DNA from: Geosiphon pyriformis uo1
Lineage: Eukaryota > Fungi > Glomeromycota
Reading direction: 5' to 3'
Assembly (NCBI GenBank): GCA_016748015.1
Contig: JAAOMT010000003.1
Span: 128,373-192,372 of the forward strand
DNA: 64,000 nucleotides
Shown here in pieces: positions 24,131-36,359 of this stretch (position 1 is the stretch's first letter; each line of letters begins with the position of its first letter). A program made the position numbers and the translations under genes. Under the pieces are notes generated by a model. That model saw only the letters and a program-made list of their open reading frames with translations, was not told the origin of the DNA and searched no databases.

Positions 24131-26104
24131 TTGTATTACTAAACAAACTACTACTAATAAGTATTTAATAAATTAATACTATTTAATTTAATGTTTTCAA
24201 TGAATTCTTTTTTATAAAAAAACAATATATAGCTTTTTATTATTAATTATTTGACTTAATAACAGATTATTTACTCTTAATATTCAGTTGTAGTTAACTT
24301 GACTCTTATTTATTTATTAATTTTATAAAATTATTACTTTAAGAAAAACCAAATATGATAAAAATATTTTTATAAATCCCAAAGTTTAAATTACTTGGCT
24401 TTAAATCATAAAATTATTTTTTCTGGTTTTCAAAGTAAATTTACAAAACTTAAATGTTCAAAAATATTATTTTTAATTAATTAATTATTTTGTTTATTAT
24501 TATATGTTTAACCTGTTGGGCAACTGGCTATAACACTTATAACTTTGTTTTTTAAAATTAATGATAAAACTAAAATTAACTTGTTTTTTTGAAAACTCAA
24601 CTTCAAAAATTAATTGTAATAAAAAATATTTTTGAGTAGTCTTGTTATCTTAAATAAAATTTAAAAAAACTTGTATATATTTTGCTAATAGTTTATATAT
24701 GCTTTTTTTTAAGAAAAAATTCCCAAAATTAAAATAGACTTGTGTTTTATCAAATATATACTTTGGGCTTTCAAAATCAAACCGTATATAGTGACCTAAG
24801 AGTTTTCATTTAAGATGAGATTTCAGCAGTAACCATCTTTTTGACCATTATTATTTCTTTTTAATTAATCACTATTTTTTTGATTCCAATTGTTTAAGAC
24901 AATTTTAACTCAAGTTTAATTAAATAAAGAAAAAAAATATTATTTTGAATCTTACAAACAACTTGAAACCCTAGCATGCATTGCATATTGTAAGCATCAA
25001 TCCCATCTTTGTTAAATATACCAATCCTAATAAGATCGGTACAAAGATTATAAAAATTATCCGCTTCTTCTTGCACTTTAATCTCCCCATGTCCTCTACT
25101 AGAAACCCAAGATAACTGATCAATAGTGTTTATTATTGCATCAGGTTGTCTTGCCCTGCCTGTTAATTTTCTCGCCTTTGATCCAGGTGCCTCTCTATTT
25201 GACCTGTAATTTTTTTATAGTTTAAAGAGGGTATATATTGAATTTTGGAACGATAATTAATTAAAAAACTTACCAACGCAAAAAGACATCACGATCTGGA
25301 TCTGCGACAATTGAATTCAAAACTGGATCGATATATGTATTACAAAGTTCAAATTCCCCAACTGAACTTTTCGACGTAAATTCAGGAACTTTTTCTATGC
25401 TAATAATAGAAATAAAAAAGGTTATATGATATAAAAACTTTTTGTTTCATAATTCAATACAATCTTACATATTTTTAATGGCTTTTAAAATGGACATTTC
25501 TCCATAAGAACAACCAATTGTAAACGTTTGAAGCTCTTCTATTGCAGTATTTCTTGTAATCTTGCCCTGCTGCAATCGCTGTAAAAAAAAAAATTTTTAT
25601 TATTATAAAAAAACCTTAACTTTAAATAAAATAAATAATACCTTAAAAATTGGTGTAAGCTTTGTTAAAATTTCAGAATTAAATTCTGCTTCTTGTTCAG
25701 TAAATTTCTGCAACATTTCTTTATGCATCATTTCTAATAATTCTAGACCAAAAATTTCAACCATTAATGGACAATATTGTCTTAGTTTTAATAAAAGAAT
25801 GTGCGACACTGACCTATAAAATAAAGTAAATACAATTAGACTTTATAATTACTTAACAAATTAAAAAAATTAAAATACTTACAATATTTGCGGCACGTGA
25901 CTCTTTACAAAAAGCCCTTTTGTCATCGCTAACTTTAATGATTTCTCTTTGAATTGATACCATTTTTCTGAAATATCAATTTTATTTATAACCCATCTAG
26001 ATCCTTGTCGAGGTAAAGATTCCAATTGCAATTCCTCCACATCATTAATTATGATTGGACAATCAAACGACGTAATTTCGGTCTCTGTATCTGCTTCAAT
26101 TATC
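24131..26104 (-). repeat. Left arm of ~2-kb inverted duplication (partner ~34712-36359)
   Basis: Near-identical reverse-complement match over exons, introns and the AT-rich tail on both sides of the gap in the partner. Confidence 0.92.
24745..26104 (-). pseudogene. 5'-truncated multi-exon PD-(D/E)xK nuclease (CR-REase-like) gene, copy 1
   Basis: Spliced exons give ...GEFELCNTYIDPVLNSIVADPDRDVFLRW/SNREAPGSKARK..RARQPDAII...RGHGEIKVQEE...LCTDLIRIGIFNKDGID...LGFQVV, then VTIYGLILKAQSIYLI decaying into AT-rich DNA. Confidence 0.8.
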
Positions 26105-28995: not shown

Positions 28996-29501
28996 GGTAT
29001 CGAAACAGATAGGTGTTGTTTACTTTCGGACAAAGTCCCGATTTTTTGCGTAGTGAGGCACACGCTACCATTGTATTTGATAAAAGTGATCAGCGTTACA
29101 AATTGTAACGCGCACGTGATTTTTAATTTTTTAATATTTAGTGTTATTCAATCATGACATCGGAGCTTGAATTATTTGAAGCTGAGAATGCCGAGATTCC
29201 TGAACTTAACAAGAAGTTGATAAAGTTTACCGATTGAGATTGAGATGGTGAGCTTAAGGCTGATATACACGTTTACCGACAAGTTTTCCGGGATATTTAG
29301 ATGTGGTTGTGAATTCTGCTTAACAACATAGCCGAAATTATTCAATTCAGCTCTTTCTTCATTCAAAAAGAAATTATAATAGGAACGCCAGCCGAAATTG
29401 TTTCGGGGGATTGCAGCCACATTTTTATTCTCATAAAAAGAGGTCATGTTTTATTCTGATAAATTTCAAATTATCGTTAACTTCAAAGGATGAAAGAAAC
29501 C

Positions 29502-29978
29502 ATGAGACGAAATTTTTATTTTGTAGTTATTTTATTAGTTACGATCTCAATGATCAATCCTATTCCACTAGATTTCTATACTTCAGCATCTCCTTCTACC
29601 TCACAATCATTTACTCCTTTGTTTGAACCATGCAATGGTGTTCCTCGGCCCGATTTTATCACTGTAACAACCGAACCTGAAACTTTCGCTGGTGGAGAAA
29701 AAATAAAAATTACTGCTAAGGGAATCGCAGATAAAATTATCAGCTCAGCCACGCTTTATGCTGGATTTTCCGATGCTAAAAATGATGACATAGGTTCTAT
29801 TTCTAAAAATCTTTGTCATCATTTGGAAGGAGGACAAAGTTGTCCGATTGCACCAAGAATAAAATTCAGTGTATCAACACACGTAAGAGCACCACGCTCT
29901 ATTATTGGTACCGCTTTTGTTATTAGTATTGTAGAAGGATCCAAACAATTATTCTGTGCAATAGCTCGTTTGGATTAA
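29502..29978 (+). CDS. Secreted ML (MD-2/NPC2-like lipid-recognition) domain protein
   Basis: Signal peptide MRRNFYFVVILLVTISMINP; FEPC, VTTEPETFAGGEKIKITAKG, NLC...SCPI, LFCA with four Cys; intronless. Confidence 0.88.
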   Translation: MRRNFYFVVILLVTISMINPIPLDFYTSASPSTSQSFTPLFEPCNGVPRPDFITVTTEPETFAGGEKIKITAKGIADKIISSATLYAGFSDAKNDDIGSISKNLCHHLEGGQSCPIAPRIKFSVSTHVRAPRSIIGTAFVISIVEGSKQLFCAIARLD

Positions 29979-31099
29979 ACATAAGAATTTTTAAATGGTT
30001 GAGGGAGTTCGTTTACAATAAGCTTAGTTTGAGTTTTTCCATTCATTAAAAGTCGTCAGATTCATTTTAATAATTTCATTTCTCTTGTTATTTGTTTGTT
30101 TTATTTTTCTCTTATTCCCTTAAATTTATTGTTTGCATCATCTAAAAGTGATATATTCGTAATTTTTATGGGCTCATACACATTGCGAGATTATTTGGAG
30201 TGACCACTTTGGTTTTTAGTAATGCGTGAAATGGGATCTTTATGCATTCATTTTACGTGTTACCAATTATTAATACAAAATAATAATACCTGCTTTCCAC
30301 TCGGTTTTAAAAAAATTTAATAAAACTATTGAACATGGTTTCTTTCTTTTTCAATGAAAGAAAAAGACAAGAAATCTGAAAATCCGGGGCTTTTTTTGGA
30401 TCTTTCAAATTATTCTCAAGCCGACCATTTTTCGAGTTTAAATTTTCTAATGGGACAAATGCTAAAGCTATTATATCACAATACAATTGTATTATAAATC
30501 TATATTACTTTTCAATGCTGTCTAATAAAAAAAATTTTAGATTAAGAAATATACAGTACCAACTTTTCATCTTTCTAGTCTCCTTAACACACAAATAGAT
30601 CAATTGCTCTAGTAATTGACATTTTTGTAACAAAGTATATACGTCATCTGATATAAAAAGCAAAAAGGATAAAAAATAAGTAATTAAAAGTGATTTTGCT
30701 TAATGTTGACATAAGAAAGGAACATAAACAACAGATGAAACAAAACAGAATGTCTGTAGACTTGTTCACTAAAATTTTAATATTCTGGATAATATTATAT
30801 AAAAGACAGCCAAATGTTTAATTTTGCTAAGAACAATATAAATTCATTATGCTTTATTAAAATTACTCATATTTTTTTATACAACATTTATATTGTTTGG
30901 ATAATATTTTATTAATTGTTAGAGTCTTTTAAATTGAATTTCTTAAATGTAACTTTGTTTAAATATATCTTAAAAATGTATAATTTGTGGTATTACATGT
31001 TTGTTTTATTAATATGTTCAATTTACATAATTTACCAAGTATTTACTTTACATGTATTATCTATAATGATAACTAAGATTTTATATTGTGTTTTAATCT

Positions 31100-32700
31100 T
31101 CAAGAATTATGTATAAATCAACAAAATTTCTAAAAAATAATAAATTTAAAAGGCGAAATAAGCTGACTAATTTTTATTTATAACTGAATAAATAATACTA
31201 TTTAATTTTAAAATATTACTTTAATTTTTAATTGTATTTATCTTTTTTTTTAATATTTTTACCTATTTTTGAAGATATTTACCAAACTCAATTTCTGAAA
31301 TATAAGATAAATTATTCTTTTTATTCTTTGTTTTTGTAGATTGTAGATTGTTATTTTTTTTCTTTGAAATTTTATCCATTATTATATTTATAATTTTATT
31401 TGTTATTTTATTTAATAACTTAGTATTATTATTATTATTAAAAATCATTTGAATTAAAATAGTTTTAAAAAAATCAATGATATTTGTAAGTTATATTAGT
31501 TTGTAGTTTGCTTATATTAAATGCTTTTAATGTTAAAAATATATAACTGGTTATTAAAACAATTACTTATTGCCAAATAATTATGTTAATTTGTTTAAAT
31601 AAAATTCATACAACTTTATAATTGTTTAATTAAAACAGTATTATAAATACCAAAAATTTTATATTTTATTAATTTCAACTTATTAGTTAAATTATTAATA
31701 TAATTTTAATAAGTCAAAACATTATTTTTAAATTAATAATAAGTTGTAATATTAAAAGATATTTTTTTAAATAAAAATTATTAAACTTGCAAATAATACA
31801 CTTTGGTTTTTTTTGTCTGTTCATATATAATAATAATAACTTAATTAATTTTTAAAAGTAAAATATTTAATATTAAAAACCATAAATCAAAATTGATTTA
31901 TTTTATATATAAGATAAAAAATTATAAAAAACAATAAAATTAGTTACTTTTATCTATTTAAGTATTATTTAAGTTTTTTTATTAGTTATATTACAAAAAT
32001 ATTATCATAATATAATATTTAAAATAACTTTAATTAAATAAGTTTTATCTTATTAAAATATATTAAATAACATATACCACAAAGTAAAAAGCTTAACTAA
32101 ATATTTAATTTGATTTTAAAATAGATTAAATTTGATAATTTTATAGATTTCTTAATAAATATAATTGTTTTCTGGCTAATATCGAGATTTATTAAAAGAT
32201 AACAAAAATTTTATAGCTAAAATCCAAAAAAATACAATTATAACAGCTTATAAAAATAAAATATAATTTTATAAACTTACTTTAAATGTTTTTTGTGTAC
32301 ACAAAAGAGTAATATATATATAAAATAAACTGTTTTATTTGATTTTTCAACTGTTAAAATTGTATAAATTTTGTAATAAGTTTTAAATTGTTTATTGTAT
32401 AATTAACTAACAAAAAATTGGTTATTGGTATTCTAAAAATATGTAATAACTTTAAATTCTTGGTTAATAATTTTTTTCAATAATATTAATTTTTTAATAA
32501 TATTTATATTATAAAAATTAAAAATTATTATATATTTAAATATAAATATAAATAATATGTAATTGTATACTTATTTTATAGCTGTATAAACATTAATACT
32601 ATTTGTAATAATAAAAACAACTTTGATATTTATTGTTTTTAATTCAGTAATCATACTTTTGTTTTTATTTATAACTTTTTAATGTCTTTTATATTTAGAG
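31100..32700. other. Extremely AT-rich island (probable eroded repeat)
   Basis: Very few G/C; only spurious Asn/Lys/Ile-rich ORFs. Confidence 0.6.
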
Positions 32701-33640
32701 CTAATATAAGCTTTTTAAACATAGGGTTTTTTTAGATAACAATATAATAATTTTCAAAAAATATTTATTCTTAACATTTGTCCATCTATTATATACTTAT
32801 TGGATCTTTTTTCAAAGCAATTTTCATAGATTTATAAGTATCATTAACAACTTTATTCATTTAATTTTTGATGATTAAAAAGTATAAAAAGAGGATTCAA
32901 AAATTTAAAACATTGTTTTGCTTAAAATTATTGACCCAAAACAAAAATCATCCACAAAAAGCTGTTATTTAAAGCAAAAGTTTGTTAAATTGTTTTTTGA
33001 TCTTTATTGTCAATGGCTGGACAATATAATTATTTATTGGATCATAAGATTCTGAATGGACTATTACTTTTTAGGATGAAAGTGAAAAAATATAATACAC
33101 TTAAGGTAAGTCTTTAATTATTAATAACATTTTATTCATATTCAAATTGGTTTATTTGTAGATGATAAAACTATTACTAGCTCATCTATTTTTGCTCGTT
33201 CTTCAGCTTACATTTTTTTAAATGTTGTATAATACGATCTTTTTTGTTAGGAAAAAATTTTTTTTTCTTTCTGGTTTTCCTAAAACATCGATACAACATT
33301 TGCAAAAGGGTTTTAAATATTGGTTTTTACTATATTTTTATTTGATAAAAGAGGTAAAGGTGGCATGATTAGGGTTTTAGTAGCTCAGATCAAGGACATA
33401 AATAAAAAATGGATTTCGCTGGTTTGAAGTTACACACGCAACAATTTATAATTGGACAAAAAAATTTTTTTCGCATTGTAAATCTTTCGCTAATAATAAA
33501 ATAGCATAGCACACGTTAACAGCCTTCAAGAGTAAAATGAAGCTTGACAAAATTATCTTGGGTGACTTAATTGAATCAGGTAATTAGTACTATTAGGTGT
33601 AAAATATCAGTCTGCTCACTATACTCACTTATTGACTTAA

Positions 33641-35508
33641 ATGTCAGAATACTGGACATAAATCCAAAACCCATCCTTACTTTCATATCTAACACACATA
33701 AATTGTGAAAAATCTACCCAAATTTTAGAAAAAGAAAAACTCCATTCAGAATTTATTTCTGAATTAATAAAAATTTCAAAGCATTATGAATACAATGGTA
33801 AGCTGCATAAAACAGCAGTTAATGCTTTACGGGAAGTTACTGTGAGTTTGAAGAGTTAGCGGTCATCCTGTTTGCGATCCTCATGCTGCGGCACCCGCGA
33901 GACCACTCAGGAAAAAACTACAAATGTTATACTGCTTGCATGATATTCCATCAGCTAGTTTGCTGGTTTCGGCTGGCAATATGAAAGGTTTCGTCTCTGC
34001 TGATGGACATTCTGGAAATGCACATTTGTTGTCCTGTTTGCGATCCTCCATGCTACAGCAACTGCGAGAGCCACCATTCAGGAAAAAACTACAAATGCTA
34101 TACTGCTTGTATGATATTCCATCAGCTTCAGCTCTGCTGATGAAATACCACTAACCCCTATCATTTAGATTGATTATTCTAAAATTATTTTTTATTATAA
34201 TAGGTTGACAAGAAATCAAAAGATGTGCAGAAGTTCTGGGAGCTATGAGCAAAATATGAAACTTCAAAAAAAGCGGAAATTTGTTGAGGTAAGATATTAA
34301 ATCTTAATCATTATATTTATTTATTTGATGTTAACTTGAATTTTACTTAAATTTTAGGCAGAAGACAATATCGAATATCTACAAATGGGTAACAAAAGTT
34401 TACATGTTGTGCATAAATCACAAGTGTCTCTTTTGACAGCTTCAGGGAAACGACAAGCCGGGTAAAATGTTTTTTTTAATGAAGTTTTACGATTTTCTAG
34501 TTTAATAATAAAATGAAATATATTTGATCATAGTGAAGAAAGGCTAGAAGAAGATATTTTTGAAGGTCAGTTTAATTCAAAATAGCTAAGATTGTTGAGA
34601 TGTTACTTTTATTTACTAATTTAAAAAATTTACTTTGTTTTAGAAAACCCGTTTTTAACAAAAAATAGCCCTTCTAGTCCTTCGCCAGTTTTACAATCAC
34701 CACCATTTCAAGATAATGAAGCAGATACAGTGACTGAAATTACGTCGTTTGATTGTCCAATCATAATTAATGATGTGGAGGAATTGCAATTGGAACCTTT
34801 ACCTCGACAAGGATCTCGATGGGTTATAAATAAAATTGATACTTCAGAAAAATGGTATCAATTCAAAGAGAAATCATTAAAGTTAGCGATGACAAAAGGG
34901 CTTTTTGTAAAGAGTCACGTGCCGCAAATATTGTAAGTATTTTAATTTTTTTAATTTGTTAAGTAATTATAAAGTCTAATTGTATTTACTTTATTTTATA
35001 GGTCAGTGTCGCACATTCTTTTATTAAAACCAAGAAAATATTGTCCATTAATGGTTGAAATTTTTGGTCTAAAGAAATTTTGCAGAAATTTACTGAACAA
35101 GAAGCAGAATTTAATTCTGAAATTTTAACAAAGCTTACACCAATTGTTAAGGTATTATTTATTTTATTTAAAATTAAGGTTTTTTTATAATAATAATTTT
35201 TTTTTTTTTACAGCGATTGCAGCAGGGCAAGATTACAAGAAATACTGCAATAGAAGAGCTTCAAACGTTTACAATTGGTTGTTCTTATGGAGAAATGTCC
35301 ATTTTAAAAGCCATTAAAAATATGTAAGATTGTATTGAATTATGAAACAAAAAGTTTTTATATCATATAACCTTTTTTATTTCTATTATTAGCATAGAAA
35401 AAGTTCCTGAATTTACGTCGAAAAGTTCAGTTGGGGAATTTGAACTTTGTAATACATATATCGATCCAGTTTTGAATTCAATTGTCGCAGATCCAGATCG
35501 TGATGTCT
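33641..35508 (+). pseudogene. Multi-exon PD-(D/E)xK nuclease (CR-REase-like) gene, copy 2, with its 5' half; runs into the gap
   Basis: Exon 1 MSEYWT*IQNPSLLSYL...ALREVT|GTGAGT; exon 2 VDKKSKDVQKFWEL*; later exons match copy 1; TAA at 33659, TGA stops and a 22-bp deletion near 35070. Confidence 0.78.
33866..34147 (+). ncRNA. Candidate structured RNA, tandem pair (period ~166 nt), in intron 1 of the nuclease gene
   Basis: Two copies of TCCTGTTTGCGATCCTC...CAGGAAAAAACTACAAATG...TTCCATCAGC; several nested stems and a UUCG-capped hairpin; GC-rich relative to other introns. Confidence 0.5.
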
Positions 35509-36359
35509 NNNNNNNNNNNNNNNNNNNNNNNNNNNNNNNNNNNNNNNNNNNNNNNNNNNNNNNNNNNNNNNNNNNNNNNNNNNNNNNNNNNNNNNNNNNN
35601 NNNNNNNNNNNNNNNNNNNNNNNNNNNNNNNNNNNNNNNNNNNNNNNNNNNNNNNNNNNNNNNNNNNNNNNNNNNNNNNNNNNNNNNNNNNNNNNNNNNN
35701 NNNNNNNNNNNNNNNNNNNNNNNNNNNNNNNNNNNNNNNNNNNNNNNNNNNNNNNNNNNNNNNNNNNNNNNNNNNNNNNNNNNNNNNNNNNNNNNNNNNN
35801 NNNNNNNNNNNNNNNNNNNNNNNNNNNNNNNNNNNNNNNNNNNNNNNNNNNNNNNNNNNNNNNNNNNNNNNNNNNNNNNNNNNNNNNNNNNNNNNNNNNN
35901 NNNNNNNNNNNNNNNNNNNNNNNNNNNNNNNNNNNNNNNNNNNNNNNNNNNNNNNNNNNNNNNNNNNNNNNNNNNNNNNNNNNNNNNNNNNNNNNNNNNN
36001 NNNNNNNNNNNNNNNNNNNNNNNNNNNTTGAACATTTAAGTTTTGTAAATTTACTTTGAAAACCAGAAAAAATAATTTTATGATTTAAAGCCAAGTAATT
36101 TAAACTTTGGGATTTATAAAAATATTTTCATCATATTTGGTTTTTCTTAAAGTAATAATTTTATAAAATTAATAAATAAATAAGAGTCAAGTTAACTACA
36201 ACTGAATATTAAGAGTAAATAATCTGTTATTAAGTCAAATAATTAATAATAAAAAGCTATATATTGTTTTTTTATAAAAAAGAATTCATTGAAAACATTA
36301 AATTAAATAGTATTAATTTATTAAATACTTATTAGTATTAGTTTTGTTTAGTAAAACAA
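34712..36359 (+). repeat. Right arm of ~2-kb inverted duplication (contains N gap 35509-36027)
   Basis: Reverse complement of 24131-26104. Confidence 0.92.

Follow-up and report, generated by a model that had tools for sequence, protein, structure and literature searches.

Intronic minisatellites, or variable number tandem repeat arrays, consist of head-to-tail non-coding units whose copy number varies, which are homogenized within arrays and of which the copies at the edges are truncated. Fungal introner-like elements are multi-copy, long and structured introns, and the fungal intronic thiamine pyrophosphate (TPP) riboswitches (RF00059) control alternative splicing. Here we describe a GC-rich tandem repeat in an intron of a nuclease-like gene of Geosiphon pyriformis uo1 (Eukaryota; Fungi; Glomeromycota; assembly GCA_016748015.1). 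The locus lies in a stretch of 64,000 nucleotides of contig JAAOMT010000003.1 (positions 128,373 to 192,372 of the forward strand), hereafter the window, in whose coordinates positions are given unless another sequence is named; the intron occupies 33842–34203 on the plus strand. The repeat family is previously undescribed but ordinary in kind, namely a private intronic tandem repeat, and literature searches found no published description of these repeats.

The closest resemblance in organization was to minisatellites. The units are arranged head to tail, are non-coding, vary in copy number and are homogenized within arrays, with truncated copies at the edges, and the monomer of 164–176 bp is in a range typical of many satellites. 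Unlike these, the repeat occupies very few loci and stands out by its GC-richness in a genome that is otherwise extremely AT-rich; arrays of the family are found in two distant paralogues at the homologous intron, and their sense strand has one fold in common, in which G-U pairs are numerous. Likeness to introner-like elements was found in an intron far longer than the norm, in predicted structure and in the presence of similar copies in other introns. However, many near-identical introns at non-homologous positions, as would mark such elements, were not found: there were about eight loci and one intron position, the copies being in paralogues at that same position and at one non-intronic site, and the array is internally tandem. 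As with the TPP riboswitches, a structured RNA in a 5' intron could affect splice-site choice, but there was no match to the TPP or any other riboswitch model and no conserved ligand-binding core, and the copies are tandem and variable in number.

The intron is 362 nt long, in phase 0 and of the spliceosomal GT-AG type, with a GTGAGT donor starting at 33842 and an AG acceptor at 34202–34203, while neighbouring introns are approximately 60–100 nt. GC content over 33800–34100 was 43–45 %, compared to 25–30 % in the adjoining exons and 10–15 % in nearby intergenic DNA, in agreement with the initial annotation of this sequence, which had singled out the intron as unusually long and GC-rich. The order of the exons and the residues flanking the intron are continuous in the relatives P0001 and L046, the latter a transcript-like contig and both from other organisms. 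This supports the phase-0 junction, and by homology the interval 33842–34203 is best read as an ordinary spliceosomal intron.

Within the intron, a leader of 19 nt (33847–33865, plus strand) lies directly 5' of the first unit and is followed by 1.7 copies of the unit. The leader aligns with those of the C718 and C625 copies described below and is thus common to three lineages. Unit A is full-length at 166 nt (33866–34031, plus strand; covariance-model score 149.8 bits) and comprises a hairpin, H1/H2, and then an H3-closed domain containing H4, H5, H6 and H7. Unit B (34032 to about 34150, plus strand; 54 bits) is truncated, having kept H1 and H4 and lost H5–H7 and the 3' strand of H3. Its GC fraction was 0.44 over 34032–34160 and 0.37 over the longer cmsearch match at 34032–34194, which includes the AT-rich tail of the intron. 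The head-to-tail arrangement was evident from a 55-nt block with 95 % identity at an offset of 171 and a 17-nt block with 100 % identity at an offset of 166, and the duplication certainly exceeds chance. The two tandem copies reported in the initial annotation were therefore recovered with the same starts, but copy A had been ended too early. The unit runs to 34031 and thereby takes in the supposed spacer at 34011–34031, a segment that all lineages have conserved.

To place the unit in the genome (128 Mb in 792 contigs, very AT-rich), searches were made by DNA sequence, by translated frame, by degenerate pattern and by a covariance model built from seven units. All searches converged on the same set of about eight loci, at which the whole-genome covariance-model scan placed 39 units: the window, C485, C718, three arrays on C625, and arrays on C607, C693 and C708. 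A pattern match on C778, inside a coding region, was rejected as a chance match. The copies form three sequence lineages, represented by the window and C485, by C718 and by the C625 group, with periods of 164–176 bp. Tandem Repeats Finder gave a period of 176 bp, and the alignment showed a 164-bp variant with a 12-nt deletion, a disrupted H1 and the loss of a junction segment. Copy number was 1.7 in the window, C485 and C718 and about six or more in the C625 and C607 arrays. Identity between units within an array was 93–99 % (C625, C607, C693 and C708), and the terminal copies were truncated at every locus. The C625-group loci carry identical exon fragments and, judged by sequence, are recent segmental duplicates or pieces of the assembly. 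The long C625 arrays (L015 2437–3485, L016 and L037) are broken by runs of N and are possibly mis-scaffolded, and one two-unit piece on C625 lies between gaps, upstream of exon 1.

The C625 array is flanked by homologues of exon 1 and exon 2 and is thus in the same intron as the window array, there with a weak GTTTTT donor. That a very distant paralogue carries the repeat in this intron too indicates some link to the gene family, and to this extent the proposal that the unit is tied to an intron of a nuclease family was upheld. Against such a tie, no exons of the family lie within about 5 kb of the C718 copy. A gene close to that copy (L041 1420–4435, minus strand) resembles a raffinose synthase or alpha-galactosidase by eye, with motifs such as IIIDDGWQ; it starts approximately 100–150 bp from the repeat copy on the opposite strand, the repeat lying upstream of the gene.

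Identity of the units between lineages was 70–74 %. For exon 1 of the window and C625 host genes, the corresponding values in a codon alignment were 52 % at the nucleotide level, 32 % at the amino acid level and 42 % at third codon positions, which are saturated, and the AT-rich tail of the window intron (34151–34203, plus strand) could not be aligned with the C625 tail. Since conservation of the units far exceeds that of exon 1, either constraint acts on the unit, or its arrival or homogenization came long after the divergence of the genes. Changes were polarized using the other two lineages. The ratio of GC>AT to AT>GC changes was 16 : 4 in window unit A, 24 : 7 in C485 unit A and 14 : 2 in C625, and it was reversed in C718 (4 : 8), the most GC-rich lineage at 56 %. 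This pattern fits a GC-rich ancestor that would have been eroding under the mutational bias of the genome.

Most of the individual stems recorded in the initial annotation were present. The TCCTG/CAGGA stem pairs 33866–33870 with 33908–33912, the 9-bp stem TCCATCAGC/GCTGATGGA pairs 33947–33955 with 33999–34007, and ACATTTGT (34022–34029) has a complement in the ACAAATG of each copy. However, individual stems are not clearly beyond chance; of 300 dinucleotide-shuffled versions of unit A, 16 had a perfect 9-bp stem. The double change reported in the inner hairpin was compensated at one position (G-C to A-T) and uncompensated at the other (G-C to A·C), and both changes between copies A and B fall at CpG sites. 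The TATAC hairpin, listed there among the stems of the unit, is not conserved and proved to be altered in the C718 lineage and, in the alignment, deleted from the 164-bp array variant.

A consensus fold was calculated with RNAalifold on seven full units. It begins with the 5' hairpin H1/H2 and continues with a domain closed by the long-range helix H3 (CAAAUGUU/ACAUUUG; 33920–33928 with 34022–34029). Inside this domain, the 9-bp stem above, H4, bears two small hairpins and stands beside H7, giving a three-way junction. The fold fits all three lineages, in keeping with the earlier suggestion that a common sense-strand fold across copies is possible, and its G-U pairs can form on the sense strand only. 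In addition, ACCACTAAC (34147–34155) can pair with the leader sequence GTTAGCGGT (33855–33863) at 8 of 9 bp, and the leader is paired with the tail in the minimum-energy fold of the whole intron. The tail segment includes an ACTAAC at 34150–34155, which is a possible branch point.

Folding energies on the sense strand were unremarkable, with z-scores of −0.55 for unit A, −2.06 for unit B and −1.18 for the complete intron, whose antisense strand gave −2.84. Single-sequence minimum-energy folds differed among lineages (z = −1.06 and −0.01). Covariation was assessed by two measures described by the tool as robust to relatedness, with only three independent lineages available. Pairs changed on both sides numbered 9 against 7.5 expected, a value reached in 107 of 500 shuffles, and pair types numbered 31 against 29.8 expected, reached in 181 of 500; neither was significant. 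Taken together, the data allow a sense-strand fold common to the lineages and mildly favour it, and the evidence for it is suggestive rather than demonstrative.

The unit was then compared with known classes of RNA and with coding sequence. A scan at E≤10 of Rfam 15, among whose families are the hammerhead, HDV, twister, hairpin, pistol and hatchet ribozymes, gave no relevant match; the three matches returned were at chance level (E = 2.5–8.8, 16–20 bits against thresholds of 39–80), and none was a ribozyme, a riboswitch or a small nucleolar RNA (snoRNA). An H/ACA snoRNA was rejected: the ANANNA motif occurs in the linkers of the window and C718-A and is absent from those of C625 and C718-B, and no ACA follows the 3' domain in any lineage. 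A C/D snoRNA was likewise rejected, with AUGAUGC in C625 and AUGAUAU in the window being approximate boxes, GUGAGAU in the place of these in C718, and no terminal stem; the CUGA of H4 reads CUGG in C718. As regards a coding repeat, none of the unit lengths (166, 176 and 178 nt) is divisible by 3, stops interrupt most frames, and there was no third-position excess (p = 0.2–0.5) or codon periodicity. The Cys/His-rich open reading frames (ORFs) of the unit had no Pfam match, and an exact-protein look-up of two repeat ORFs, one from the window and one from C718, found neither on record.

Beyond these loci, the unit was sought by nhmmer and the covariance model in L044, L045, L047, L048, L049 and L050 with no match, and a metagenome scan with a 27-base degenerate pattern also gave no match. 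A protein-seeded metagenome scan returned two contigs, both too short to reach the intron. Homologues elsewhere, on which the initial annotation had made its proposal depend, were thus found at other loci of the same genome; the other-species family loci and the metagenome pattern scan yielded none. The closest relative of the window-type gene, on metagenome contig L047, has an intron of approximately 345 nt at the same site but of different sequence. An 11-nt identity with the window leader was observed there, in a marginal local alignment (z = 2.3, 4 of 200 shuffles). Of the 12 local comparisons made with other elements, this one and one with z = 3.1 showed similarity, in both cases no more than marginal, and collinear blocks suspected by eye were not reproduced by MAFFT.

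Other members of the family nevertheless carry GC-rich elements in their 5' regions. The family gene of L045 (GCA_003547095.1, which we take to be Diversispora epigaea) has no intron at this site, and two tandem GC-rich units of approximately 110 nt, unlike the studied unit in sequence, lie at L045 5700–5900, just upstream of the annotated ATG. A similar pair of GC-rich units of approximately 110 nt was found upstream of the annotated start in L049 (1030–1200; GCA_910591835.1), and the L045 and L049 units have a common core around CTTTGG...GGAG. In L044 (4329–5314; contig C787, approximately 1,083,300–1,084,300), there are 3.9 copies of a 253-bp GC-rich repeat with 98 % identity, which cannot be aligned with the unit of approximately 170 nt. 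Folding z-scores of the other-species elements were −1.45, −2.59 and −0.41. The elements of L044, L045, L047 and L049 are therefore like the studied repeat in gene family, in 5' location, in GC-richness and often in tandem arrangement, but neither the covariance model nor nhmmer could align them with the unit. The recurrence of GC-rich 5' elements in the family hints at a shared requirement.

The host gene belongs to a large and uncharacterized family. A 149-amino-acid exon of the C625 paralogue matched 125 cluster representatives, and the Atlas neighbours were uncharacterized 'hypothetical protein' clusters found only in Mucoromycota. No Pfam family was found among the 125 representatives, with one sub-threshold PDDEXK_7 match in one member. 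The family consensus includes KPDF...GEVKPP, and the AlphaFold model of the family domain had a predicted local distance difference test (pLDDT) value of 90. Its top Foldseek matches were restriction-endonuclease-like domains, DrdV, NucC and a Holliday-junction resolvase, all of them weak (E = 5e-3 to 6e-2), and searching solved structures with a profile of the host domain gave nothing meaningful. A PD-(D/E)xK-like fold is plausible for the host family on the basis of this model. The initial annotation of the host as a PD-(D/E)xK nuclease gene is therefore supported in part: the gene belongs to a family for which such a fold is plausible, the Foldseek E-values being weak.

Host exons were each compared with their relatives separately. 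The host domain in the window falls in a run of N (approximately 35,510–35,990) and was inferred from the C485 paralogue, which is 86 % identical. The window-type and C625-type nuclease domains gave no mutual tblastn match, and each is closer to relatives in other species. The two host genes belong to different subfamilies and are anciently diverged paralogues. Many host copies are fragments or frameshifted. A second family member in the window (24912–26079, minus strand) gave tblastn matches to P0123, P0105 and P0102 at 37–43 % identity; the 2 kb upstream of it has 8–17 % GC and no GC-rich repeat.

We consider, with confidence slightly short of even, that the repeat is a private minisatellite-like family lodged in the intron and shared between distant paralogues, with at most a modest role in splicing in cis. 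The module would have reached the paralogue introns, or been homogenized between them, long after the paralogues split, by ectopic recombination, gene conversion or segmental duplication. Arrays would grow and shrink through unequal exchange or replication slippage, and units would erode under AT-biased genomic mutation. The unit would be transcribed only within the pre-mRNA and then spliced out, and the sense-strand hairpin and three-way junction probably just compact a long intron or mildly shift splice-site use. The initial annotation had allowed that the unit might prove to be a minisatellite with no link to nuclease introns; the first part of this largely holds, yet some tie to the gene family is present. 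Several results weigh against a purely minisatellite-like origin. Consensus pairing was possible in 95 % of cells compared to 31–46 % in slid controls, and over 37 distinct units in 92 % compared to 29–45 %. Variation was lower in paired columns (20–24 %) than in unpaired columns (32–37 %), a fold derived without a given lineage fitted the left-out lineage at 37 of 47, 40 of 42 and 21 of 33 pairs, and G-U pairs were far in excess of A-C pairs, by 12 : 1 in the held-out C718 unit. The units also hold 45–56 % GC where introns of the genome have 10–20 %, which a neutral repeat should not do unless young or selected, and other family members, here and in other arbuscular mycorrhizal (AM) fungi, bear unrelated GC-rich tandem or hairpin elements 5'. 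Such results would be accommodated by a functional cis-acting intron RNA that folds on the pre-mRNA, gates splicing and limits the nuclease-like protein, its amplification being incidental; it might bring the splice sites together or sequester a weak donor or branch point. The common sense-strand fold with its G-U excess and with stems more conserved than loops, the conservation of the unit above that of exon 1, the shared intron position in two distant subfamilies, one of them with the weak GTTTTT donor, the capacity of the leader to pair with the tail around ACTAAC, and the presence 5' in other family members of GC-rich elements, either repeats or hairpins, all favour this explanation. We nevertheless regard it as a serious but doubtful rival, given ordinary folding z-scores (−0.01 to −2.06), robust covariation that was not significant (107/500 and 181/500 shuffles) across only three independent lineages, and the finding that the covariance model and nhmmer see no conservation in the closest other-species intron, that of L047. 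The range in copy number from 1.7 to at least 6, the GC-to-AT decay, the one copy outside any family gene and the fragmentary or frameshifted state of many host copies point in the same direction. A wider form of this explanation, which we hold to be rather unlikely, would make the unit one lineage-specific version of a modular sense-strand RNA that the family keeps 5', that is exchanged among paralogues and that gates the nuclease, with the repeats of other species as functional equivalents.

The remaining explanations fare worse. Insertion of the leader and units as a mobile or transposon-derived element, for example an introner-like element or a transposon-carried satellite, would explain their occurrence both in distant paralogues and at one intergenic site unrelated to these, homology that begins within a few bases of the donor, an age much younger than that of the host exons and GC-richness relative to the genome. 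We consider it improbable, since there are only about eight loci, several of them recent segmental duplicates with identical flanking exon pieces, and neither terminal inverted repeats nor duplications of a target site were noticed. Furthermore, both intron copies are at a homologous position, where an intron is also present in the other-species relative, making independent insertion there unlikely. That each unit is an intron-encoded small RNA gene, whether snoRNA-like or another processed cluster, is very improbable: a tandem unit of approximately 170 nt on the sense strand of an intron, GC-rich in an AT-rich genome and intergenic in one lineage as an independent gene might be, would suit such a gene, but there was no Rfam snoRNA match, the linkers of C625 and C718-B lack the ANANNA H box and no ACA comes after the 3' domain, and the RUGAUGA/CUGA boxes are not conserved in C718 and lack a flanking terminal stem. 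The initial annotation had favoured an uncharacterized self-cleaving ribozyme, a splicing switch or riboswitch, or a guide or scaffold RNA for the encoded nuclease, and a three-way junction closed by a long-range helix does resemble aptamer architecture, and the element is associated with a nuclease-like gene. This proposal did not stand and is now highly improbable: no ribozyme or riboswitch model matched at E≤10, no junction core is strongly conserved across lineages, and the arrays, of 1.7 to at least 6 copies, consist of near-identical and truncated units, with one lineage outside family genes and no unit in the other-species family loci examined. The comparison with Rfam that it had called for gave no matching family, folding energy was ordinary and robust covariation was not significant, and to our knowledge the PD-(D/E)xK family has no RNA-guided members. 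Finally, short ORFs with C..C..HHSG..KC..AC motifs are common to the window and C718 and would be expected of a decayed or unannotated exon for a Cys/His-rich peptide repeat. We find this scarcely credible, as the lengths are not multiples of 3, stops are present, third-position excess and Pfam matches are absent, and the shared peptides merely mirror nucleotide identity.

At the window locus itself, the condition of the host gene bears on the present status of the private tandem repeat. The 3' part of the exon 1 coding sequence (33662–33841, plus strand) is an open frame that ends in ...ALREVT and has 33–36 % amino acid identity by tblastn to exon 1 of the C625 paralogue. Of 12 residues compared in the peptide of exon 2 (34204–34288, plus strand), 7 match the C625 paralogue. 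After the TGG at 34237–34239, exon 2 lacks 2 nt relative to the C485 paralogue, and as a result the frame from exon 1 meets an in-frame TGA at 34246–34248. The host copy in the window is probably a pseudogene by frameshift, or else the apparent frameshift is an assembly or sequencing error. Because of this apparent frameshift, the window copy of the repeat, which is itself truncated, is probably without present function and thus inert. Elsewhere in the window, a spacer of approximately 2 kb between genes (30800–32800) is extremely AT-rich, with 10–15 % GC and no notable ORFs, and a 162-amino-acid ORF at 29490–29978 on the plus strand has a hydrophobic N-terminus and possibly encodes a small secreted protein.

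The repeat is much better conserved than the exon adjoining it, and the split between the two paralogues that carry it in their homologous intron predates the sampled AM-fungal lineages. If the recurrence of unrelated GC-rich elements 5' in this family in other species stems from a requirement and not from a recombination hot spot, an unrecognized control of a large, uncharacterized nuclease-like family of AM fungi would be indicated. Were the unit indeed one version of a modular RNA kept by the family, this control would consist of the gating in cis of the splicing or expression of a potentially harmful nuclease.

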